From Macrostomum lignano (Eukaryota): a stretch of 64,000 nucleotides of DNA. Position numbers and translations under genes: made by a program. Below, piece by piece: positions 1 through 64,000 of this stretch. Each line of letters begins with the position of its first letter. The stretch's first letter is position 1. The DNA lies in the NCBI GenBank assembly GCA_002269645.1, contig NIVC01000032.1:124001-188000 (forward strand). The letters are read 5' to 3'. The notes beneath the pieces are model-generated. The model was not told where the DNA came from and did no database searches. It worked only from the letters and a program-made list of their open reading frames with translations.

Positions 1-649
1 TCGACTGGAATAAGAATATTCCAGGCCTTCACTGCGACCGTCAGCTGCTGTTCATTGCTCAGCATGACGTAGTGACAGCGACGGACTTGAGCGGTCGCAA
101 GGTGCATCGAATTTACCGCCCACACATCGAGGGCTTCGGTGACATCAGTGGAATCGGTGGCAACGCAGCCTCCGTGTTTGTGTCCAGTGAAAACAAAATT
201 GCTGCATTCAGCAAAGCGACTTGGCAGATGGAGACGGTCATCACGCTGTCTCAGCTTCCTTTTGCTTATTTAAACAACCTGGCGACTCACGACAACTGCA
301 TTCTGGTGATAGCAGGGAGCGCGATAAGGTGCACAGAGTGCGCATCGACACCCAGCAGCTGGTCGCCTCCTTCCCGACTCAGCGTTCCGGCCTCCAACAG
401 TTTGCCTTTTCAGAGGATGTGGCCGTCGACAGCAGAGGCCGCCTGTTCGTGAGTGAAAATGGTGGTCACTCAGTGCGAGCGGTGGCTGCAGACGACGGTT
501 CGCTGCTGTGGACTCTGGGCGGGAGAGTCAGCAGAGACGGCAGATTTTGGCATCCATGGGGTCTGGCGGTGGTGACGGGATGTCCGCGCGAGCAGCTGCT
601 GGTGGCTGACTGTTACAACAACAGACTACAGGTGTTCAGTGCATCCTAA
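1..649 (+). pseudogene. 5'-truncated (by window edge) NHL-repeat beta-propeller coding region, paralog of 2019-3722, with a 1-nt frameshift at ~312-313 (pseudogene or consensus error)
   Basis: Frame from nt 3 reads DWNKNIPGLHCDRQLLFIAQHDVV...THDNCILVI. The frame of ORF 221-649 continues RERDKVHRVRIDTQQ...DVAVDSRGRLFVSE...VADCYNNRLQVFSAS*. Both align codon by codon with the C-terminal part of the minus-strand ORF 2019-3722. GTG ATA GC AGG vs paralog GTG ACA GAC TGG shows the missing base. There is also an in-frame 9-nt deletion (GGG ACT CCG) near 516. Confidence 0.8.
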
Positions 650-2018
650 TTTTATTCACAGGCCGAATAATAATCAAACTGTAGTCTTACTGGAGTGATT
701 GGTTTATCGGAGGCCGGGTTTTCGTTTGACGTTTTCTTATGATAGAATTTTACATTTGATAAGCTTTGAATGATAATTGTTTATCATGTCAAATACGAGC
801 TTCATTCAGAATTTTCTATTTATTGAGTAGGAAGCACATAATTAATTAATCATGTGTATTAAAGTATTTACACTGGCTCATAACGCTTCTCTTTTTCTGT
901 TTTTCTTTTTCTAGAAGCTTCAGCACCAGAAAATGTGACTGGACTGTAAAAAAATGATTTTCAACAGAAACTTAAAAAACACATTTTTTGCCTTTGCAAA
1001 TTATTTTGGAAATTTCTAATCACGCTGTGCTGAATCAATCTCCAACTTTTGACCTTCAGATTCAGACTGCTAATTTATTTTTATCAGTCGCTCGCTTCTG
1101 CAGTTTTCTCCAAAAAGCCCCTCAGTTTGCGCTGCAACTTACTCTCGTACTTGATTCAAATGCAAACGAATTTTGACTAATTTATCTATTTTTCTTATGA
1201 AGCCTTTATCGTACCGTTTCTATGTTAGAACTGATGTCAAATATATCTGGTCATTTCTCTTTTAATCACCTCCCTCGACTCAAGGACCACTTTAGTACAA
1301 GAGGACATTAAACTGCAAGATCTTGCCAATTTTTAGAAAAGAACTGCAGATGAGAAACATCTTTTTTCCATCACAAAATCAATGATTCCATTTGATCTGG
1401 GGCAGTGACGATGGCTATTATTCTTTGTCGCAGGGCTAAGTTGTCGCAGGGCTAATTCCTATACTTAATTTTATCAATGTACTTTTGCACGAATGTACTT
1501 TTACGATTGGTAGCGTGACTACTTCTCTATCTACTTCTATATTGGTAGCGTCTACTTATCTTATTGGTGGCGTCTGTACATGTACTGTACTCTTTGACCT
1601 GAGCGGTCTAATAGCACTGTCTACTCTATTTACTCCTATAGTTTTCTCAGTCCTGGGCGTTCCCGGGATCAGAGGGTCACAGCCTATGCTCTTTCTCTGC
1701 CCTGATGCGATCTTCTCCTGCTATATGAAGCGTTTCCCCGGTCCTGAGGCGATTTATACACTCTGAGGTTATTGTCCTGAGGCAATTCTCGCTTTCTAGC
1801 GGTCTATTACTACTCTCAATATGAGGATTTTTACTCTTGTAAAAATCAAAAAATAAAAAAAAGCAAATAACCAAGTCATAAGCGATTTCAATATTACAAC
1901 GAACTAAGTTTGCTTATTAAAAACCAAGAGGCGGCAAACGTGTAAAAAGTAAAAACAAGTTACAAGGAATACCTTTTAATTTACTCGATTACATTTTAAA
2001 GGGGTTTTAAGTTCTTCT

Positions 2019-3722
2019 CTAAGCGCTGAACACCTGCAGTCTCCTGTTGTCACAGTCAGCAACCACCAGCTGCTCGCGCGGACCTCCCGTCACCACCGCC
2101 AGACTCAACGGCCTGCTGAATCTGCCGTCTCCGCTGCCTCTCTCGCCCGGAGTCCCCAGAGTCCACAGCAGCGACCCGTCGTCTGCAGCCACCGATCTCA
2201 CTGAGTGACCCCAATTTTCACTCATGAACAGGCGGCCTCTGCTGTCGACGGCCACATCATATGGAAAAGCAAACTGTTGGAGGCCGGAACGCTGAGTCGG
2301 GAAGGAGGCCACCAGCTGCTGGGTGTCAATGCGAACTCTGTGCACCTGATTGTGATTCCAGTCTGTCACCAGAATGCAGTTGTTGTGAGTCGCCATGTTG
2401 CGCAGATCAGCATCAGGAAGCTGAGAAAGCGTGATGACCGTCTCCATCTGCCAAGTCGCTTTGCTGAATACAGCAATTTCGTTTCCACTGGACACAAACA
2501 CGGAGGCTGCGTTGCCGCCGATTCCCCTGATGCCCCTGAAACCCCGAATTTGTGGGCGGAGTCGACGCACCGAGCGACCGCTCAAGTCCGTCACTGTCAC
2601 TGCGTCACGCTGAGCAATGAACAGCAGCTGACGGTCGCATTGAAGGCCCCAGATGTCCTTCCAATCGTCGCAATCGTCCAATCGTCTGTCGCAGTGGCAC
2701 CGCAGCTTCTGTGAGCCGTCCAAAGACAGCACCAGTAGATCTCTGACTGAAGAGCATGATGCCAGGATGCAGGGCTGAGGCAAAGCCTCGCTGCGGTCTC
2801 CCGCTGAGTCGATGCGAACCACACGGCCTGAGCGGTCACTAACGAATCCGCTGGTGTCGCTGCAGACAGCCAGCCATGCAACAGGACCATTCAGCTTCAC
2901 CTCGTGACTGAAGACCATCGGCTCTAACATTCTCTCTCTCTCAGCAGCGTCTATCTCCTCGGATGTCGCGGTCACCGCAGCTTCTCTCGACCAGTCGCCC
3001 TCTTCACTGCGTCCCGCACAAATGCCGACCAGCCGCTCGAGCTGGCCCAGAAGCCGCAGCTGCAGCTCCTCATTGTCGCTCTGTTCTCTGAGCAGGCGCT
3101 CTGACCTCTCAAAGTCGGCCTCCAAGTCTCCAAGCGATTCGTGCATGGACTGGACCAGGCGAAGCAGCTCCGCCATGTCGCCTGCAGTCTCCGCCGTGGC
3201 CACCTCCTGCTTGTAGCTGGAGACGTCCTCGAGGTCCCGCTCGCACACACGCACTGCCTCAAGCACACCTGAGAGCTGGCCCGTCACCCTGCTACGAAAC
3301 GAGTCGATGTGTTGCTGTACCAAATCGAATTTGTGATTGACCTCTTGCAGCTGCTGTTGGATGTCGAGAGCGAGACGACGCAGCGACTCAGCGTCTTGTC
3401 TTGGTCGCAGCAGCGCTGCACGGCTGGCTGCACCTGCTGCGCCTTGTGATTCTTGGGGGTCTTGTGAGACTTGTGACTCTTGTGACCCTTGTGAGACTTG
3501 TGACTCTTGTGACTCTTGTGAGTAGGCACGCAGCAGCTCTTCCACCTCCTCCTTGAGCTTGTATAGATTGGCCACATCGACACTGAGGTGTTGACTGCAC
3601 ATGTGGCAGCGGGAGAACGGAGCCACACCGACTGCAGCTTTGTCGCAGATGATGCAGAGAGGAGTTGGGGAAGCGGGAGGCGCGTCCGAACTCGAGCTGC
3701 CGCTGGAGCTCCTGCGGCTCAT
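2019..3722 (-). CDS. Single-ORF 567-aa degenerate B-box / coiled-coil / NHL-repeat protein (RING-less TRIM-NHL-like architecture)
   Basis: N-terminal C-x2-C-x12-C-x2-C-x2-H (CIICDKAAVGVAPFSRCHMCSQH); heptad-rich L/E/Q/R helical region (~aa 105-235); NHL signatures FAFPYDVAVDSRGRLFMSE, GDGRFSRPLSLAV, VVADCDNRRLQVF, ILVTDWNHNQVHRV. ATG context AACAATG; ATTAAA about 40 nt downstream of the stop (TTTAAT at 1975-1980 on plus). Confidence 0.85.
   Translation of the reverse strand: MSRRSSSGSSSSDAPPASPTPLCIICDKAAVGVAPFSRCHMCSQHLSVDVANLYKLKEEVEELLRAYSQESQESQVSQGSQESQVSQDPQESQGAAGAASRAALLRPRQDAESLRRLALDIQQQLQEVNHKFDLVQQHIDSFRSRVTGQLSGVLEAVRVCERDLEDVSSYKQEVATAETAGDMAELLRLVQSMHESLGDLEADFERSERLLREQSDNEELQLRLLGQLERLVGICAGRSEEGDWSREAAVTATSEEIDAAERERMLEPMVFSHEVKLNGPVAWLAVCSDTSGFVSDRSGRVVRIDSAGDRSEALPQPCILASCSSVRDLLVLSLDGSQKLRCHCDRRLDDCDDWKDIWGLQCDRQLLFIAQRDAVTVTDLSGRSVRRLRPQIRGFRGIRGIGGNAASVFVSSGNEIAVFSKATWQMETVITLSQLPDADLRNMATHNNCILVTDWNHNQVHRVRIDTQQLVASFPTQRSGLQQFAFPYDVAVDSRGRLFMSENWGHSVRSVAADDGSLLWTLGTPGERGSGDGRFSRPLSLAVVTGGPREQLVVADCDNRRLQVFSA
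3443..3523 (-). repeat. Coding 9-bp tandem repeat (9 units) encoding SQESQESQVSQGSQESQVSQDPQESQG
   Basis: Plus-strand units CTTGTGA(GA/CT/CC/GT/TT) and one CTTGGGGGT, in exact 9-bp register from 3443 to 3523. Confidence 0.9.
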
Positions 3723-4531
3723 TGTTGGATTGTCTGTGAAGAGCTGAAATGCAGATGAAGTTTTATTCAGACTTATGAAGACTTATTTAGAATTCCAAGT
3801 TACTGAGTGGGCCATGAGGGTAATTTGGATTTAATTTTTGATTGTAAGAGGATGAGAATGTTATGCCTGTGCTTCTCAGCTGCGCTAGCATTGTGGGTGG
3901 CTCTCCGTCCTATCTAATCGGAAGCCTTCTAGTAGCGTAGGTAGTGCCGCTGCCACCAGTTTCTTAGTGTCTCACCCGTCTCCTCATCGACGGGTGAGGT
4001 TGAGGATCCCGTCGGAACGAAATAAACAAGACAAGCGAACACAGCACTTCAGGCGGATTAGCAATTTCAGACTAATAGTCAGCAGATCCTGTCGGGCTCA
4101 GTGGGCTGGCTGGGAGGGCGATGCCAGCCTCCAAGCAGCCTCAGAGGTCAGGGTCTAGGTTTGCACAGGCAAGCCAATAGCAAGCGGGAATTAGAATAGC
4201 AGGCAGGAAATTAGAATGGACAGAATTGAAGACTCGAGACTCCTTGACAAAGCCAAGGGTTCGCATTTATAGGCAGAAATCTATTGCACCATCCCATGCA
4301 AGAACCCATTGCGCCAGATCGTGTGACGCTGCTTCTATTTTTAGCAATAGACGCGGAGGTTTGCATCAGAGAAGGCAAGGGGCCCGGATCACATGATTTC
4401 GCCATAAACATGGACCGATTGGACAGTGAGAAATTCACTGTAGTTCGGACTGTTGGAGAAACAGAGCTACTAGTGAAGCCACTAGTGACCGCCGCACAGA
4501 GAGCGAACCAAGAGCAGGCTTAAGCCAAGCT

Positions 4532-5125
4532 GCCCAGCGGCTGCAAACAAGAGCACAATGGGGCAGGGAAGACAGGCAGCCAAAGGGGAAAGCTGCGCCC
4601 AGCGGCTGCAAACAAGAGCACAAGGGGGCAGGGAAGACAGGCAGCCAAAGGGGAAAACTGCGCCCAGCGGCTGCAAACAAGAGCACAATGGGGCAGGGAA
4701 GACAGGCAGCCAAAGGGGAAAGCTGCGCCCAGCGGCTGCAAACAAGAGCACAATGGGGCAGGGAAGACAGGCAGCCAAAGGGGAAAGCTGCGCCCAGCGG
4801 CTGCAAACAAGAGCACAAGGGGGCAGGGAAGACAGGCAGCCAAAGGGGAAAGCTGCGCCCAGCGGCTGCAAACAAGAGCACAAGGGGGCAGGGAAGACAG
4901 GCAGCCAAAGGGGAAAGCTGCGCCCAGCGGCTGCAAACAAGAGCACAAGGGGGCAGGGAAGACAGGCAGCCAAAGGGGAAAGCTGCGCCCAGCGGCTGCA
5001 AACAAGAGCACAATGGGGCAGGGAAGACAGGCAGCCAAAGGGGAAAGCTGCGCCCAGCGGCTGCAAACAAGAGCACAATGGGGCAGGGAAGACAGGCAGC
5101 CAAAGGGGAAAGCTGCGCCCAGCGG
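4532..5125. repeat. 65-bp minisatellite (VNTR), 9 full copies plus 9 bp
   Basis: Unit GCCCAGCGGCTGCAAACAAGAGCACAA(T/G)GGGGCAGGGAAGACAGGCAGCCAAAGGGGAAAGCTGC starts at 4532, 4597, 4662 ... 5117. Copies differ only at the T/G site and at one G>A in copy 2. Confidence 0.95.
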
Positions 5126-5541: not shown

Positions 5542-6002
5542 CGCATCCTCCGAGAGGACCTGCAGCTGAGGTGGGCGTGTTGTGTTCAGTGTGGGTAACC
5601 CCACAACCTCACGGATGAGCAGAGCCAGATGCGAGTCAACTGTGCCACATAATTGCGACGGGTTCGGCTAGGAATAAAGGAGGAAAGGTACAATTTGTAC
5701 GTTGTGCAAGACGAGACATGGGTGTCCTGGGATCCTCATGGAACCAAGACTGACAACAGGACTTGGTTTGAGATTGGAGAGGCCCAGAAGCAGGTCGTGC
5801 GCCCGAATGCCATGATGAAGCGGAAGTCCCTGCTGATGGTCACGTTCATAGCCAACAAGCAATTCTCAGTCACTGCATTGTCTCAGGGAGAGACATTGGA
5901 TGCCCAGCAGATGGTGAGCTACCTCTGGTGATCCGGAAAACTGTGGCGTACTCTGCGCTCCTACCCAGTCCGACTGAGCGAGATCAGCTTGCAAATGGAC
6001 AA
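5542..6002 (+). mobile_element. Decayed mariner (DD34D) transposase, 5' surviving part
   Basis: RILREDLQL, then W-V-(+1 nt)-PHNLTDEQ (WVPHEL-type motif, 5592-5610), VVQDETW (first catalytic D at 5710), RKSLLMVTF, LQMDN (second D at 5998-6000). In-frame stops at 5650-5652 and 5929-5931. The N-terminal HTH region and left TIR are not found. Confidence 0.85.
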
Positions 6003-6120: not shown

Positions 6121-7015
6121 TAGACATTGCCCCGAGACATCGTGTATTTACGACATGCCAAGACATTACCCGACACATCATTTATTTCCACGAGACATGC
6201 CGAGACACCATTTATTTCCTCAAGACATTACCCGAGACACCATTTATTTCATCGATACATTATCCGAGACATCATTTATTTCCACGAGACATGCCGAGAC
6301 ATCATTTATTTCCACGAGACATTACCCGAGACACCATTTATTTCCTCGAGACATTACCCAAGACACCATTTATTTCCACGAGACATGCCGAGACACTACC
6401 CGACACACCATTTATTTCCTCGAGACATTATCCGAGACATCATTTATTTCCATGAGACATGCCGAGACATCATTTATTTCCCCGAGACATGCCGAGACAT
6501 CATTTATTTCCTCAAGACATGCCGAGACATTACCCGACACACCATTTATTTCCACGAGACATGCCGAGACACCATTTATTTCCTCGAGACATTACCCGAG
6601 ACATTACCCAAGACACCATTTATTTCCTCGAGACATTACCCGAGACACCATATATTTCCTCGAGACATTACCCGAGACACCATTTATTTCCTCGAGACAT
6701 TACCAGAGACATTACCCGAGACACCATTTATTTCCTCGAGATATGCCGAGACATTACCCGACACATCAATTATTTCCTCAAGACATGCCGAGACATTACC
6801 CGAGATACCATTTATTTCCACGAGACATTACCCGACACATCATTTATTTCCTCAAGACATGCCGAGACATTACCCGAGACACCATTTATTTCCACGAGAC
6901 ATTACCCGACACACCATTTATTTCCACGAAACATGCCGAGACATTACCCGACACACCATTTATTTCCACGAGACATGCCGAGACATTACCCGAGACACCA
7001 TTTATTTCCTCAAAA
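6121..7015 (+). repeat. Modular subterminal tandem array (GAGACAT / GCCGAGACA / TACCCGAGACAC / CATTTATTTCC blocks)
   Basis: Recurrent blocks such as CGAGACATTACCCGAGACACCATTTATTTCCT and CACGAGACATGCCGAGACATCATTTATTTC; reverse-complement copies (ATGTCTCG) cluster at 7555-7715. Confidence 0.85.
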
Positions 7016-7177
7016 TATGAGGAGACGTATAAAAAGTATGTAAATGGAGGATAGACTGGACAGTAGCAAGTATTGTACGTGTATTTAATCGCTTGTCAAA
7101 AAATGAAATAACAAAGGCATAATTTCGCGATTGCACACTGCAGTAATACTGTATAATAAATGATATTAATGTACATA

Positions 7178-7510: not shown

Positions 7511-7739
7511 TGTATATATATTATAATTAAAGAAAGTAGAAAGGAATCCCGGGGCAATGTCTTAGGACAATGTCTCGCCATGCCTAGTGAAAAATAATGT
7601 CTCGGGGCAATGTCTAAAAAGAGACACCCCACATGATGTCTCCCCAACATTTCTTCAGGACATCTTATCATGAAGATATCATGACGATTGGGGGGGGGGG
7701 TTGCAATGTCTCCGAAGCATCTTTCATTTTTTACTCGGG

Positions 7740-8109
7740 CAATGCTCGACTGCATGTTGCAAGACCCTTACGGGATTTCCTGCAAGAGCGCTCTGTCGTC
7801 GTGATTTGGCAAAGCCCCTACAGTCCCGATCTGAACCCATGTGACCAATTTCTGTTCCTTTGGCTGAAGAACGCACTCAGAGGCATGACCTTCAACAGCT
7901 GTCATGAGGTTAAAGATCCGCCTCGTTGCAGGTGTTGCGGAGCATCTCCGAAAGTGCCCTCCGAGACCAGGTGGATCTGTCCCTGGACCACTGCCAGCGC
8001 GTGATTGCTGCCAATGGACACAGCGTTACTGATTAGAGTTAAAATGTTTCATGTTTTTACCTGTTTGTTTGTCTAGAGGTAACTGACGACAAAACTTTCG
8101 TCCCCTTAG
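7740..8109 (+). mobile_element. Decayed mariner (DD34D) transposase, 3' part, with probable right TIR
   Basis: NARLHVARPLRDFLQERSVVVIWQSPYSPDLNPCDQFLFLWLKNALRG (YSPDLxPxD motif, third D). After a frameshift near 7918 it reads ASLQVLRSISESALRDQVDLSLDHCQRVIAANGHSVTD*, a mariner-type C-terminus. Ends GACGACAAAACTTTCGTCCCCTTAG followed by TA (8110-8111). Exactly 34 residues separate D2 and D3 after rejoining. Confidence 0.85.
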
Positions 8110-9365: not shown

Positions 9366-10025
9366 TCACCAGGAGCCGCGTCGCTGATCGATCTGATCGC
9401 TGCAGGGCGACAGCAACGGCGATTTCTCGTTGTCGTCGACATTCTGTCGTCGCGTGCATTTGGTCGCCGCCGCTACCGCCGTAACCGCCTCCGCTGCCTC
9501 TCGCAGCTCCTCGTCAGTGGGCGGTGACGCCGCCGCACCTGACATCGGCGGCGGCGCCCTGGGCGGCGTCGAAGTGGCCGGCGACGCCTCACCACCGAGG
9601 TTGCCGATGTCGTTGTTGTCGTCTTCGCAGCCGACGCTGATGCCGCGGCGAAAATGTCGATCGTTGCGTCGACGCCGAGGATCCAACGTGGAGCGACGCT
9701 GACGCGTGGGCAACAGCCGGTGTCGGTAGCCTCCGACATCCGACGATGGCGTCCGACAACCGTCGACAAAAGAGCCTGCGGCTCCGGCTTGCATTGAGCG
9801 CTGCCGCTGCAGCTGCAGCAGGCTGGTGGCACGAAGGAACGACACTGAGCGACGTCGGAATGGCACCGGTTGGACAAGCGTTGCGGCGGCTGTGGCGGCG
9901 CCTGCGGCTGTCGATACGGCGGTAACGGCATCGACTGTGGCAGCGGCCGCGGCGCTGACGGCCGTGCGACGGTGCAATCGCTTCTGGTAGCGCTGGATGA
10001 GCACGAACACTAGGAATAGGGTCAT
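9366..10025 (-). CDS. SLC18B1: SLC18B1-like MFS transporter, last coding exon (end of TM12 plus ~200-aa cytosolic tail)
   Basis: Acceptor CTCAG| at 10026, phase 0, matching the upstream donor. Reads MTLFLVFVLIQRYQKRLHRR (hydrophobic helix end plus basic stop-transfer), then a low-complexity tail ending DNEKSPLLSPCSDQIDQRRGSW*; TGA at 9368-9366. Confidence 0.75.
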   Translation of the reverse strand: MTLFLVFVLIQRYQKRLHRRTAVSAAAAATVDAVTAVSTAAGAATAAATLVQPVPFRRRSVSFLRATSLLQLQRQRSMQAGAAGSFVDGCRTPSSDVGGYRHRLLPTRQRRSTLDPRRRRNDRHFRRGISVGCEDDNNDIGNLGGEASPATSTPPRAPPPMSGAAASPPTDEELREAAEAVTAVAAATKCTRRQNVDDNEKSPLLSPCSDQIDQRRGSW

Positions 10026-10710
10026 CTGAGGTCACAGGGTGAGGGTTGTAGGTTAGCGATGTGTAGGCAGGGTCATCTGAGGTCACGGGGTGAGGGTTGT
10101 AGGTTAGCGATGTGTAGGCAGGGTCATCTGAGGTCACAGGGTGAGGGTTGTAGGTTAGCGATGTGTAGGCAGGGTCATCTGAGGTCACGGGGTGAGGGTT
10201 GTAGGTTAGCGATGTGTAGGCAGGGTCATCTGAGGTCATGGGGTGAGGGTTGTAGGTTAGCGATGTGTAGGCAGGGTCATCTGAGGTCACGGGGTGAGGG
10301 TTGTAGGTTAGCGATGTGTAGGCAGAGTCATCTGAGGTCATGGGGTGAGGGTTGTAGGTTAGCGATGTGTAGGCAGGGTCATCTGAGGTCACGGGGTGAG
10401 GGTTGTAGGTTAGCGATGTGTAGGCAGGGTCATCTGAGGTCACGGGGTGAGGGTTGTAGGTTAGCGATGTGTAGGCAGGGTCATCTGAGGTCATGGGGTG
10501 AGGGTTGTAGGTTAGCGATGTGTAGGCAGGGTCATCTGAGGTCACGGGGTGAGGGTTGTAGGTTAGCGATGTGTAGGCAGGGTCATCTGAGGTCATGGGG
10601 TGAGGGTTGTAGTTAGCGATGTGTGAGCAGGGTCATCTGAGGTCACGGGGTGAGGGGGGTGTAGGTTAGCGAAGTACATGTATGAGCAAAGAAGGGTCAT
10701 CTGAGGTCAC
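10019..10710. repeat. 51-bp intronic minisatellite whose unit is the 3' splice site (12 near-perfect plus at least 2 degenerate copies)
   Basis: Plus-strand unit GGGTCATCTGAGGTCAYGGGGTGAGGGTTGTAGGTTAGCGATGTGTAGGCA starts at 10019, 10070, 10121 ... 10580; degenerate copies at 10630 and ~10694. Confidence 0.95.
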
Positions 10711-11248: not shown

Positions 11249-11309
11249 CTGAAAATTGGATAATAATAATTACAATTATTTTCCAACATTCCATCTTTAG
11301 ACATCTCAG

Positions 11310-12200
11310 TAAGATCCGATATTTAGAAATCACAAGAAGATCTCATCTTTAAAAATCCTAGATCCCATCTTCAGAAATCCCTGAAGATCCTATCTCAAGA
11401 AATCCCAGAAGATCCCATCTCAAGAAATCCCCAGAAGATCCCATCTTAGAAATCCCAGAAGATCCCATCTCAAGAAATCCCCAGAAGATCCCATCTTTAG
11501 AAATCCCAAAAGATCCTATCGTTAGAAATCCGAGAAGATCCCATCGTTAGAAATCCCAGAGAAGACGCCATCTTTAGAAATCCTAAAAGATCCCATCGTT
11601 AGAAATCCCAGAAGATCCCATCTTTAGAAATCTCAGAAGATCCCATGTTTAGAAATCCCAGAAGATCCTATCTTTAGAAATCCCAAAAGATGCCATCTTT
11701 AGAAGTCCCAAAAGATGCCATCTTTAGAAATCCGCAGAAGATCCCATCTTTAGAAATCCCAGAAGATCCCATCTTTAGAAATCCCAGAAGATCCCATCTT
11801 TAGAAATCCCAGAAGATCCCATCTTTAGAAATCCCAGAAGATCCCATCTTTAGAAATCCCAGAAGATCCCATCTTTAGAAATCCCAGAAGATCCCATCTT
11901 TAGAAATCCGCAGAAGATCCCATCTTTAGAAATCCCAGAAGATCCTATCTTTAGAAATCCGCAGAAGATCCCATCTTTAGAAATCCCAGAAGATCCTATC
12001 TTTAGAAATCCGCAGAAGATCCCATCTTTAGAAATCCCAGAAGATCCTATCTTTAGAAATCCGCAGAAGATCCCATCTTTAGAAATCCCAGAAGATCCTA
12101 TCTTTAGAAATCCCAGAGAAGACGCCATCTTTAGAAATCCTAAAAGATCCCATCGTTATAAATCCCAGCAGATGCCATGTTTAGAAATCCTGGATATCTA
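11310..12200. repeat. 25-bp intronic minisatellite with a local 25+26 bp dimer
   Basis: Unit AGAAGATCCCATCTTTAGAAATCCC is near-perfect at ~11735-11900, alternates with AGAAGATCCTATCTTTAGAAATCCGC (51-bp dimer) at ~11890-12110, and degenerates at both edges. Confidence 0.9.
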
Positions 12201-12270
12201 AAAATACCTTTCGTGAACTAACCAAACCCCATTTAGATTTCGATGACATTTCAAAGAAAGCTGCACTCAC

Positions 12271-12661
12271 TCGGCAGCATCGAGCATATACTCATAGCTC
12301 GGCACGATGCCCATAGAGTTGAACAAGCCCAGCAGAGCCAGTGACACAATAATCAGAGCCAGACTGCCAGTCGCGCTATCCGGCGCGTTATTAGTGAACA
12401 ATGGCGACGGGCCCAGCATGGCCAAGCAGGCGGTGCAGCCGGCTAAACTGGCAAGAATCAAAGGATTTAAATCGTTAATCCGCTCCGTAATCCAACCGAA
12501 TAACGGGGCGGATAAAGCGTAGGATGCGGCAGTCAGTAGGAAGACTAAACCGATGAGCTGAGGACTCAAGTTGTAGCTGCCTAAGCGAGGCTCCAGCACC
12601 GGCTCGAATATTGACCAGCCGGTTCCCAGCACTATTACTGTCCAGCACATCATGAGGATGC
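12271..12661 (-). CDS. SLC18B1: SLC18B1-like transporter, internal exon (TM7-TM10)
   Basis: CTCACCAG|GC ATC CTC ATG ... GCC GA|GTGAGT; 391 nt, phase 1 in, phase 2 out; [60 protein letters not shown]...LGPSPLF...[11 protein letters not shown] matches SLC18B1 FLDPTL...VGLVFL...SYAISSPLFG...LGP...IPTF. Confidence 0.88.
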
Positions 12662-12694
12662 CTGGTGAGGTGGGGTGGGGGAAGCTGGCTGCTG

Positions 12695-12695
12695 C

Positions 12696-12761
<66 letters not shown>

Positions 12762-12831
12762 CAGACAGACAGACAGACATAGACAGACAGACAGACACTA
12801 AGACAGGCAGACAGACAGACAACATACAACC

Positions 12832-12864
<33 letters not shown>

Positions 12865-12895
12865 CTTAGACAGACAGACAGACACTAAGACAGGC

Positions 12896-12928
<33 letters not shown>

Positions 12929-12970
12929 CTAAGACAGACAGACAGACAGACAGACAGACAACAGACAACC

Positions 12971-13003
<33 letters not shown>

Positions 13004-13102
13004 CAGAGACAGACAGACAGACAGACAGACAACAGACAGACAGACATAGACAGACAGACAGACAGACACTAAGACAGGCAGACAGACAGACAACATACAA
13101 CC

Positions 13103-13167
<65 letters not shown>

Positions 13168-13178
13168 CTAAGACAGGC

Positions 13179-13215
<37 letters not shown>

Positions 13216-13218
13216 CTA

Positions 13219-13252
<34 letters not shown>

Positions 13253-13359
13253 CAGACAACCAGACAGACAGACAGACAGACAGACAGACACTAAGACAGA
13301 CAGACAGATGGACAGACAGACACAGATAGACAGACAGACACTAAGACAGACAGACAGAC

Positions 13360-13394
<35 letters not shown>

Positions 13395-13456
13395 TAGACA
13401 GACAAATAGACAGACAGACAGACAGACAAATAGACAGACAGACAGACAGACAGACA
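12695..13456. repeat. Interrupted (GACA)n microsatellite filling an 813-bp intron
   Basis: (GACA)n with CTAA, CAACCA, CATACAAC, GATA interruptions; a ~270-bp internal duplication (CATAGAC at ~12778 and ~13045; CATACAAC at ~12823 and ~13094). Confidence 0.95.
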
Positions 13457-13474
13457 CAAAATCCGAGAGCTCAC

Positions 13475-13921
13475 CAGGCACCCTCAGCAGGGTGAAGTTG
13501 GACACCTGTCCGTGATGAGACTCTGCATCAGACGGGATGAGCGGCCAGCTGAGCGGCACAGTGAGCAGGTAGATGCCGCCCAGCACAAAGAAAGGCAGAC
13601 CGAAGCCGCCCCAGCCGTACAGAACGCCGCCAACAGCCGGTCCTAGTACGGCGCCAATGCCGCAGAAAGTCTCAGCAATGCCAAACACCTGAGACACGTT
13701 GTCGCCAAACTCTTGCGCTATGATAACAAACGCGGCGGTTGTATAGGAAGCGAAGCCCCAAGCTGTGGTTATTCGTATTGCAAAGCAATAAATAATGAAC
13801 ATGAGACCGCCGTCCCGGCTAGGCATATGATCCAAGGCGCCAAATAGTATAGTGGCGCAACCGCCTAAGAAGGCGCCAGATAGGAAGAGGAACTTCACGC
13901 CGGCAGGCTTCATCATGGCGC
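13475..13921 (-). CDS. SLC18B1: SLC18B1-like transporter, first exon visible in the window (TM3-TM6)
   Basis: CATTTTTTAG|GC GCC ATG ATG AAG ... CCT G|GTGAGC; 447 nt, phase 1 in and out; AGVKFLFLSGAFLGGCATILFGALDHMP...CFAIR...ETFCGIGAVLGPAVGGVLYGWGGFGLPFFVLG closely matches SLC18B1 IGAKFMFVAG...TILFGVLD...ETFSGLGLILGPPVGGFLY...YEVPF (recalled sequence). TM1-2 and the start codon are not in the window. Confidence 0.9.
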
Positions 13922-62100: not shown

Positions 62101-64000
62101 AGATGCTTGCTATCTGGGGATGCTTGCTATCTGGGGGGATGCTTGCTATCTGGGGAGATGCTTGCTATCTGGGGATGCTTGCTATCTGGGTGGATGCTTG
62201 CTATCTGGGGAGATGCTTGCTATCTGGGGGGATGCTTGCTATCTGGGGGATGCTTGCTATCTGGGGGATGCTTGCTATCTCGGGAGATGCTTGCTATCTG
62301 GGGATGCTTGCTATCTGGGGAGATGCTTGCTATCTGGGGATGCTTGCTATATGGGGATGCTTGCTATCTGGGGAGATGCTTGCTATCTGGGGGATGCTTG
62401 CTATCTGGGGGGGGGGGGTGCTTGCTATCTGGGGAGATGCTTGCTATCTGGGTGGATGCTTGCCATCTGGGGAGATGCTTGCTATCTGGGTGGATGCTTG
62501 CTATCTGGGTGGATGCTTGCTATCTGGGGTGATGCTTGCTATCTGGGGGGATGCTTGCTATCTGGGGGGATGCTTGCTATCTGGGGGGATGCTTGCTATC
62601 TGGGTATGCTTGCTATCTGGGGATGCTTGCTATCTGGGGGGATGCTTGCTATCTCGGGAGATGCTTGCTATCTGGGGATGCTTGCTATCTGGGTGGATGC
62701 TTGGATTGCTTGCTATCTGGGGATGCTTGCTATCTGGGGATGCTTGCTATCTGGGGAGATGCTTGCTATCTGGGGAGATGCTTGCTATCTGGGGAGATGC
62801 TTGCTATCTGGGGAGATGCTTGCTATCTGGGGATGCTTGCTATCTGGGTGGATGCTTGCTATCTGGGGAGATGCTTGCTATCTGGGTGGATGCTTGGATT
62901 GCTTGCTATCTGGGGGGATGCTTGCTATCTGGGGAGATGCTTGCTATCTGGGGATGCTTGCTCTCTGGGGAGATGCTTGGATTGCTTGCTATCTGGGGAG
63001 ATGCTTGGATTGCTTGCTATCTGGGGAGATGCTTGCTATCTGGGGATGCTTGCTATCTGGGTGGATGCTTGGATTGCTTGCTATCTGGGGATGCTTGCTA
63101 TCTGGGGATGCTTGCTATCTGGGGATGCTTGCTATCTGGGGATGCTTGCTATCTGGGGATGCTTGCTATCTGGGGATGCTTGCTATCTGGGGATGCTTGC
63201 TATCTGGGTGGATGCTTGGATTGCTTGCTATCTGGGGATGCTTGCTATCTGGGTGGATGCTTGGATTGCTTGCTATCTGGGGATGCTTGCTATCTGGGGA
63301 TGCTTGCTATCTGGGGAGATGCTTGCTATCTGGGGAGATGCTTGCTATCTGGGTGGATGCTTGGATTGCTTGCTATCTGGGGATGCTTGCTATCTGGGGA
63401 TGCTTGCTATCTGGGGAGATGCTTGCTATCTGGGAGATGCTTGCTATCTGGGGAGATGCTTGCTATCTGGGGAGATGCTTGCTATCTGGGGATGCTTGCT
63501 ATCTGGGTGGATGCTTGCTATCTGGGGAGATGCTTGCTATCTGGGTGGATGCTTGCTATCTGGGGGGATGCTTGCTATCTGGGGGGATGCTTGCTATCTG
63601 GGTGGATGCTTGGATTGCTTGCTATCTGGGGGGATGCTTGCTATCTGGGGAGATGCTTGCTATCTGGGGATGCTTGCTATCTGGGGAGATGCTTGCTATC
63701 TGGGGATGCTTGCTATCTGGGTGGATGCTTGCTATCTGGGGAGATGCTTGCTATCTGGGTGGATGCTTGCTATCTGGGGGGATGCTTGCTATCTGGGGGG
63801 ATGCTTGCTATCTCGGGAGATGCTTGCTATCTGGGGATGCTTGCTATCTGGGGAGATGCTTGCTATCTGGGGAGATGCTTGCTATCTGGGTGGATGCTTG
63901 CTATCTGGGGGATGCTTGCTATCTAGGGGATGCTTGCTATCTCGGGAGATGCTTGCTATCTGGGGATGCTTGCTATCTGGGGAGATGCTTGCTATCTGGG
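14103..64000. repeat. Giant G-rich satellite array (~50 kb, continues past the window end), core ATGCTTGCTATCTGGGG with 17/18/19-bp and 26-28-bp variants and kb-scale higher-order repeats
   Basis: Uninterrupted head-to-tail monomers: core plus nothing, AG, G or GG; core with GGGTGG ending; extended form ATGCTTGGATTGCTTGCTATCTGGGG. Roughly 2,700 monomers (length divided by ~18.5 bp, an estimate). No unique sequence seen inside. Confidence 0.98.

Follow-up and report, generated by a model that had tools for sequence, protein, structure and literature searches.

What kind of genes occupy the first few kilobases of a 64,000-nucleotide stretch of the Macrostomum lignano genome (NCBI GenBank assembly GCA_002269645.1, contig NIVC01000032.1, positions 124,001 to 188,000 of the forward strand; hereafter the window, at its full length), and why do two otherwise similar copies differ in short patches? 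The original prediction, made from the sequence alone, took them for NHL-propeller paralogs of an expanded, intronless B-box/coiled-coil/NHL family under diversifying selection on one binding surface. The follow-up analysis finds approximately 25 propeller codons under very strong diversifying selection, with a ratio of nonsynonymous to synonymous substitution (ω) of ~10. The best explanation as a whole, held with a probability of roughly 0.7, is a Macrostomum gene family with a constant scaffold and a diversified propeller face that forms a repertoire of recognition specificities. The two copies in the window are the following:

2019..3722, minus strand: copy 2, an intact open reading frame (ORF) of 567 amino acids (aa) without introns; stop codon at 2019-2021
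1..649, plus strand: copy 1, the 3' part of a paralog comprising the last five propeller units and truncated by the window edge; stop codon TAA at 647-649

ORFs and blastn/tblastn alignment confirm both copies where they had been placed, tail to tail with a 1.37-kb spacer between them, and the coding sequence is intronless as claimed. Positions 24-642 of copy 1 align with nucleotides (nt) 1075-1700 of the copy 2 coding sequence at 86.6% identity (blastn). The nucleotide alignment contains the clusters of substitutions described for the pair—NKNIPGL/KDIWGL, AQHDV/AQRDA, EGFGDISGI/RGFRGIRGI, SSENK/SSGNE, PFAYLNNL/PDADLRNM, FSED/FPYD, ENGG/ENWG, FWHPWGL/FSRPLSL, and DCYNNR/DCDNRR—as well as the conserved 27-codon block VHRV...QFAF, with four third-position synonymous differences and no replacements. 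The "x" of the remaining cluster, VIxRERDK, is a genuine 1-bp deletion in copy 1 near 312/313, within a hypervariable patch that reads TDWNHNQ in copy 2; following copy 1 by tblastn takes frames +3 and then +2. In addition, the alignment places two in-frame indels of +3 nt and -9 nt in copy 1.

The closest matches of copy 2 are the M. lignano proteins P0001-P0006 (77-84% identity), and all full-length database relatives are proteins of this species at 72-84% identity. An exact look-up of copy 2 in the assembly index returned no identical record. Approximately 20 copies are found by tblastn in eight M. lignano loci, often in tandem, with eight copies arranged head-to-tail within a single 54-kb locus. 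Ten copies feature intact ORFs of 539-567 aa; roughly one-third of the copies in the sampled loci are disrupted, either by frameshifts or because they survive as fragments. When 1.8 billion representative proteins were searched with a profile, at least eight additional, more divergent M. lignano subfamilies with matching length and architecture emerged, along with two clusters from environmental metagenomes. The supposed expansion is borne out by the ~20 copies in eight loci and by these subfamilies; the family does not consist of one or two members. It evolves by tandem duplication and frequent gene loss, with birth-and-death turnover, and appears confined to Macrostomum. The metagenome clusters P0022 and P0028 (JGI contigs of 1.6-2 kb) carry the family propeller at 38-43% identity with the characteristic motifs included; thus, the family has relatives beyond the M. 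lignano genome sequence, and other small flatworms are their presumed source. Near-identical copies occur on different contigs—19460-21085 of L006 matches P0010, and 12652-14226 of L006 matches 15160-16854 of L007—which fits duplicated (homeologous) M. lignano segments. In the annotation, P0004 is a chimera, its gene model covering 34 kb and several copies. No prior description of the family was found in the literature, including under six M. lignano gene identifiers.

The codon alignment and the site models comprise the ten intact close paralogs. The predicted coiled coil has a nonsynonymous divergence (dN) of 0.016 and a synonymous divergence (dS) of 0.023, and the propeller overall has a dN of 0.122 and a dS of 0.146. 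Within the propeller, columns with two residues or fewer have a dN of 0.035 and a dS of 0.110—a framework dN/dS of 0.32—and the 32 columns with four or more residues have a dN of 0.85 and a dS of 0.38. The gene-wide dN/dS is ~0.8, and the M0 ω of the propeller is 1.0. The propeller log-likelihoods (lnL) are -3939.7 for M1a, -3799.0 for M2a, -3950.2 for M7, -3799.7 for M8, and -3939.8 for M8a, so that the site-model test proposed with the original prediction is overwhelmingly positive (2ΔlnL of 281.5 for M1a/M2a, 301.0 for M7/M8, and 280.2 for M8a/M8). M2a places 11% of the propeller codons at an ω of ~9.7 and the constrained class at 0.11; 25 propeller sites have a posterior above 0.9. Because recombination is present, as set out below, the site test was rerun on thirds of the propeller with a separate tree each, giving 2ΔlnL values of 51, 73, and 141. 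The coiled coil alone gives no positive selection (2ΔlnL 4.5, p=0.1). The N-terminal half was tried as a negative control and failed as such (2ΔlnL 70.5), with the signal coming from residues 4-5 and the gap-rich linker 258-264.

A tree-free check used 21 hypervariable codons set from nine M. lignano paralogs, with the window copies excluded. Copies 1 and 2 differ at 17 of these 21 codons versus 29 of 190 other codons (Fisher p=1.2e-9), with a dN of 0.77 at the hypervariable codons versus a dS of 0.154 elsewhere; none of the 21 carries a synonymous-only difference. The diversification is, therefore, more than an impression gained from two copies, since the variable codons recur in independent paralogs. 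Tyr (17-fold), Trp, Arg, Lys, Asn, and Cys are overrepresented at the selected positions, and paralogs differ in the net charge of these 25 positions, which spans -2 to +6. Enrichment in Tyr, Trp, Arg, Lys, and Asn is usual for binding interfaces.

These values bear on neutral decay, according to which the copies would be pseudogenes or relaxed duplicates and the clustering an impression from two sequences. The frameshift of copy 1, the broken third of the sampled copies, and the gene-wide dN/dS are what such decay would produce; the ten intact ORFs, the framework dN/dS of 0.32 with the constrained M2a class at 0.11, and the variation of the same codons in independent paralogs are not. Copy 1 itself carries four nonsynonymous and six synonymous private changes at otherwise invariant framework codons, which is similar to the intact copies and no surplus of replacements. 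As this is no worse than in the intact copies, its frameshift is either a recent event or an assembly error, and the neutral decay of copy 1 that had been named as an outcome speaking against selection is not seen. Neutral decay is already largely refuted and is scarcely credible as an account of the family.

The coding sequence shows evidence of gene conversion or recombination across its length: the pairwise homoplasy index (PHI) test gives p values of 0.006-0.008, and ~50% of the informative pairs of sites are incompatible under the four-gamete test. The nucleotide identity of the paralogs is 98.2% in the coiled coil (alignment columns 101-240) and 88% in the propeller; in the flanks, compared over 400 nt each, it is ~62% on the 3' side and ~46% on the 5' side, the 5' flank being otherwise not alignable. 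This pattern fits gene conversion or a very recent spread of the coding unit. Two flanking features are shared with other paralogs:

650..1050, plus strand: 3' flank of copy 1, resembling a 3' untranslated region and homologous to the 3' flanks of M. lignano paralogs
3744..3749, minus strand: splice-acceptor-like motif TTTCAG, ~21 nt upstream of the copy 2 ATG

By blastn, the stretch immediately downstream of the stop codon in the L001-L007 copies matches the 3' flank of copy 1 at 70-84% identity across 100-420 nt. In copy 2, the Ser that ends the other family members is missing, and the 3' flank shows no homology to that of the family. The TTTCAG motif is common to the three upstream sequences compared (W2, L1a, and L5a) and sits in the sole shared part of the 5' flank, which is ~30 nt long. 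A transposon-borne or retroposed origin of the genes, considered because the flanks do not align, was not adopted in view of the shared upstream splice-acceptor motif and 3' flank and of the head-to-tail arrays; no transposon features were seen adjoining family genes.

Conversion could also make the high ω illusory. It would wipe out the dS of the framework, and the patches would be old and unconstrained sequence with an ω of ~1. The significant PHI test and the incompatibility of about half of the site pairs agree with this account, as do the dS values of 0.023 in the coil and 0.146 in the propeller next to flanks that are 38-54% different, and the higher dS of 0.38 at hypervariable codons. 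However, the patches are one to four codons long and lie among 10-35 conserved framework codons, so that any ordinary conversion tract would overwrite them—selection for diversity is, thus, still needed. Moreover, 17 of the 21 cross-validated codons carry replacements with none synonymous-only, and the selected residues are biased toward Tyr, Trp, and Arg rather than random. An artefact of concerted evolution is, on balance, improbable.

A further alternative assigns the variation to targeted mutagenesis—a local germline or somatic process striking the loop-coding patches, with selection merely filtering its products. Multinucleotide changes in single patches (copy 1, 309-328) beside near-identical DNA, the 1-bp deletion inside such a patch, and the raised dS at hypervariable codons would all be expected from such a process. 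Nevertheless, no repeat, template, or motif was found beside the patches in a search that was not systematic, the patches match structural loops rather than sequence features, and the changes are overwhelmingly amino-acid-changing. No targeted-mutagenesis mechanism is known in animals for genes of this kind, and this alternative is considered very unlikely.

The domain that carries the selected codons is the following:

2022..2915, minus strand: NHL-type β-propeller, residues 270-567, by Pfam, profile search, AlphaFold2, and Foldseek

The sole Pfam match of copy 2 is one NHL repeat (PF01436) at residues 535-565 with 24.1 bits versus a cut-off of 20. The family profile matches the solved structures of Thin/TRIM32 (1e-23), TRIM71 (2.5e-23), TRIM3 and TRIM2 (1e-16 to 1e-13), and Brat (4e-5) in the PDB. 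A full-length AlphaFold2 run with nine close paralogs was weak outside the propeller and confident in one of five models; it was superseded by a propeller-only run with 18 diverse family members that reaches a predicted local distance difference test score (pLDDT) of 93.1 and a predicted template modeling (TM) score of 0.91, with all five models in agreement. The first Foldseek matches are all TRIM-NHL proteins (Thin, TRIM71, TRIM2, and TRIM3), with TM scores of 0.72-0.81 and root mean square deviations of 3.3-4.0 Å; seven-bladed WD40 proteins follow far behind at ~0.6. DSSP assigns to both AlphaFold2 models 26 strands of at least three residues, one two-residue bridge, and one irregular segment, which make up seven a-b-c-d units with a-strands starting at residues 281, 318, 359, 400, 440, 487, and 538. 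Strand 270-276, at the N-terminus, completes the last blade; solved NHL domains are likewise closed by an N-terminal strand (PMC5908797; PMC9634614). The Foldseek alignments are ~40 columns longer than the six-bladed targets, which corresponds to the length of one unit. Profile-profile alignment of the seven putative units by hhalign gave probabilities of 0.3-37%, too low to establish seven homologous repeats, although two canonical NHL units likewise reached just 17%. Canonical NHL domains feature six blades, and the strand order in the model strongly suggests seven here. A seven-unit NHL-type propeller would, if confirmed, be structurally interesting. The RLDDCD stretch—approximately six extra residues private to copy 2 (residues 346-355, window 2658-2685, minus strand)—is located between strands c2 and a3, in the least confident part of the structure model.

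By definition, the top surface of an NHL domain is formed by the d-a and b-c loops, and in Brat it binds RNA (PMC4015489). The hypervariable and selected positions of copy 2 are distributed over the predicted loops as follows, from the last unit to the first and with sites assigned by the site models unless another basis is given:

2043..2054, minus strand: hypervariable loop b7-c7, residues 557-560 (CDNR), the DxxNxR loop; P(ω>1) of 0.96-1.0 at 557, 558, and 560
2112..2117, minus strand: hypervariable loop d6-a7, residues 536-537, the xx of FxxPxG
2211..2216, minus strand: hypervariable loop b6-c6, residues 503-504
2259..2267, minus strand: hypervariable loop d5-a6, residues 486-488, with sites 486 and 488
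2355..2366, minus strand: hypervariable loop b5-c5, residues 453-456; the equivalent patch holds the copy 1 frameshift
2406..2414, minus strand: hypervariable loop d4-a5, residues 437-439, with sites 437 and 439
2526..2528, minus strand: hypervariable site 399 in the d3-a4 loop (GFGDIxGIG); seven residues among 10 paralogs
2571..2573, minus strand: selected site 384 at the bottom edge, in the c3-d3 loop, by site models and strand order
2607..2609, minus strand: hypervariable site 372 in the b3-c3 loop (IAQxDAV)
2649..2657, minus strand: hypervariable stretch 356-358 directly before strand a3 (DWKxxIxGL)
2742..2753, minus strand: hypervariable a2-b2 loop, residues 324-327, a bottom loop by strand order
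2799..2801, minus strand: selected site 308 in the c1-d1 loop, bottom by strand order
2877..2885, minus strand: hypervariable stretch 280-282 in the d7-a1 loop, with sites 280 and 282

The top half holds 19 of the 24 selected sites by strand order (p=0.013), and in the best-defined units 3-7 this rises to 15 of 16 (p=0.0017). In canonical repeats, the substitutions fall on the x positions of FxxPxG and DxxNxR, hence twice per blade, as had been described.

Ahead of the propeller, the protein features three further elements:

3588..3656, minus strand: N-terminal zinc motif, residues 23-45 (CIICDKAAVGVAPFSRCHMCSQH), with the superfamily-conserved ligands Cys23, Cys26, Cys42, and His45
3444..3521, minus strand: (S)QESQ repeat tract, residues 68-93, with a repeat number that differs among paralogs
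3015..3596, minus strand: long predicted helical, coiled-coil-like region, residues 43-236, nearly identical among paralogs

The superfamily alignment conserves just four zinc ligands in the pattern C-x2/4-C...C-x2-H. UniRef names relatives "B box-type domain-containing" and two members of a divergent subfamily "RING-type domain-containing." Pfam returns no zf-B_box (PF00643) match at E<=10 for the whole protein or three isolated N-termini, and no RING family in copy 2 at E<=1, where 22 residues precede the zinc motif, or in the isolated N-termini at E<=10; it is also blank for P0166, one of the two members named "RING-type," and for the cluster representative P0021. Given the UniRef label and the four conserved ligands, the element is called a CCCH zinc motif and is possibly a degenerate half or a remnant of a B-box. 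Thus, of the proposed B-box/coiled-coil/NHL architecture, the NHL part holds by Pfam, profile, and Foldseek, and the B-box finds no match in Pfam. The Cys of FSRCHMC is probably not a ligand, since it is not conserved across the superfamily. In two intact M. lignano copies (L004, 30444-32093 and 42611-44269), the motif reads FSLSHMC. The (S)QESQ tract ranges from ~1 to 6 units among copy 2 and the paralogs of L001-L006, and it is longest in copy 2. The helices of the coiled-coil-like region span residues 43-79, 95-168, 177-213, and 218-236 in the secondary structure of the AlphaFold2 monomer, where the pLDDT is below 50. Inspection of the sequence shows a polar N-terminus and no evident signal peptide, and Pfam finds no filamin or B30.2/SPRY domain in copy 2.

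Taken together, a constant scaffold with a diversified propeller face would work as follows. Each paralog would present a different binding surface on the same scaffold, and the family would thereby amount to a repertoire of recognition specificities. If it resembles TRIM proteins in this respect, the protein may dimerize through its helical region and so display two propellers. Lacking a RING E3 of its own, it might, for example, sequester its target, repress translation in the manner of Brat and TRIM71, or recruit a partner. The likeliest targets would be fast-evolving or diverse molecules, such as viral proteins or RNAs and those of transposable elements or other parasites.

Several points weigh against this explanation. 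Recombination breaks the single-tree assumption of the site models, which are Goldman-Yang models in our own code rather than PAML, with naive empirical Bayes posteriors and neighbor-joining trees. With gene conversion active, the fitted ω values are approximate, and the ω of ~10 is scaled to a synonymous divergence that conversion may have lowered, as the flanks are far more diverged. The apparent dS is ~3 times higher at hypervariable codons (0.38 versus 0.11), so that local hypermutation or an older ancestry of the patches may contribute. The idea of a single binding surface stands for the majority of sites in top-face loops, and not for the five of 24—308, 324, 325, 327, and 384—that fall in the a-b or c-d loops of units 1-3 at the bottom; selection is, thus, not confined to one face. 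The assignment to faces follows the strand order in a predicted model and is topological, not measured on coordinates. The protein has no obvious effector activity without a RING domain, and the ligand class and cellular role of the family are pure inference.

The same propeller could also serve an internal function rather than defence: regulation of many different host mRNAs, conflict in reproduction or gamete recognition, or allorecognition in an outcrossing hermaphrodite. Among its nearest solved relatives, TRIM71, Brat, and Mei-P26 bind RNA through the same face and regulate the fate of germline and stem cells, and rapid evolution of the RNA-binding surfaces of NHL domains has been reported (PMC5908797). 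However, regulators of host mRNAs are normally conserved, and an ω of ~10 together with birth-and-death turnover is typical of conflict; secreted reproductive proteins fit poorly with a polar N-terminus in which no signal peptide is evident; and the selected sites, with their charge of -2 to +6, are not uniformly basic like RNA-binding NHL domains. An internal function is rather doubtful on these grounds.

The diversified-face explanation can be extended tentatively. The family may be a germline-encoded intracellular repertoire built on an NHL-type, perhaps seven-bladed propeller whose top-face loops are driven by an arms race with viruses or transposable elements, and a flatworm counterpart of TRIM5- and finTRIM-type restriction factors with another fold. 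Gene conversion would keep the dimerizing scaffold uniform and shuffle loop variants among dozens of paralogs. This fuller version is possible, if speculative.

The rest of the window carries other features. Within 10 kb upstream of copy 2, tandem arrays are located at 4532-5125 (65 nt x9, 98% identity), 6161-7020 (32/42 nt units), 10018-10672 (51 nt x12.8), and 11291-12190 (25 nt x35). A remnant ORF at 7633-8004 on the plus strand resembles a DDE_3 transposase below the Pfam cut-off (E 1.8e-4, 21.8 bits versus 28.6) and may mark where a transposon was inserted long ago, between the gene pair and the satellite; the ORF at 5653-5931 beside it has no Pfam match. Two exon-like ORFs of a Major Facilitator Superfamily (MFS) transporter occupy 12267-13916 on the minus strand (Pfam MFS_1, 8e-12 and 1e-9), and a (CAGA)n microsatellite at 12695-13456 lies between both ORFs and extends into each. 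From 14116 to the window end at 64000, a minisatellite of ~50 kb with a unit of 17-19 nt (TGCTATCTGGGG(A)GATGCT) and ~84% matches bears a constant strong strand bias (GC skew +0.38, AT skew -0.46).

NHL propellers are familiar from a few developmental regulators, in which they serve as conserved modules that bind RNA or protein. By profile and fold, the closest solved relatives of the propeller belong to the TRIM-NHL proteins—Thin/TRIM32, TRIM71/LIN-41, TRIM2, TRIM3, Brat, and Mei-P26. As in these, the propeller is closed by an N-terminal outermost strand and preceded by a helical region, and the loops that vary here (FxxPxG and DxxNxR) form their RNA- or protein-binding face (PMC4015489, PMC5908797). 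In contrast, the Macrostomum family has no RING, Pfam-detectable B-box, or filamin domain; the predicted structure shows seven units of four strands where those proteins have six blades; it comprises dozens of fast-turnover copies instead of three to five conserved genes; and its face is positively selected and not uniformly basic.

Primate TRIM5alpha and TRIM22 and the finTRIM proteins of fish, with their variable B30.2/SPRY loops (PMC2657112), share with the family a zinc motif, a coiled coil (putative here), and a C-terminal recognition domain, as well as lineage-specific tandem expansions, an N-terminal half that is conserved, and positive selection concentrated in surface loops of the recognition domain. 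In the Macrostomum family, this domain is an NHL-type propeller rather than B30.2, and the RING is absent. Clustered lineage-specific expansion and loop-focused positive selection, the hallmarks of immune-type TRIM families, are both found here, and by this analogy the family may have an immune-type role.

A third parallel is the expansion of MATH-BTB and F-box substrate adaptors in nematodes, reportedly described by Thomas in 2006 in Genome Research and proposed to target pathogen proteins. These likewise are large clustered birth-and-death families with many pseudogenes, a substrate-binding domain under site-specific positive selection, and a conserved scaffold; the folds, however, are unrelated, and their known link to a cullin ligase is not seen in the Macrostomum family. 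The flatworm host is amenable to RNA interference and transgenesis, which makes the function directly testable, and the family is a clean case, found in nature, of neighboring segments of one gene shaped by gene conversion and by diversifying selection. A hypervariable NHL face would add a new scaffold to the diversified recognition domains of animals, next to LRR, Ig, B30.2, MATH, and fibrinogen-related domains.

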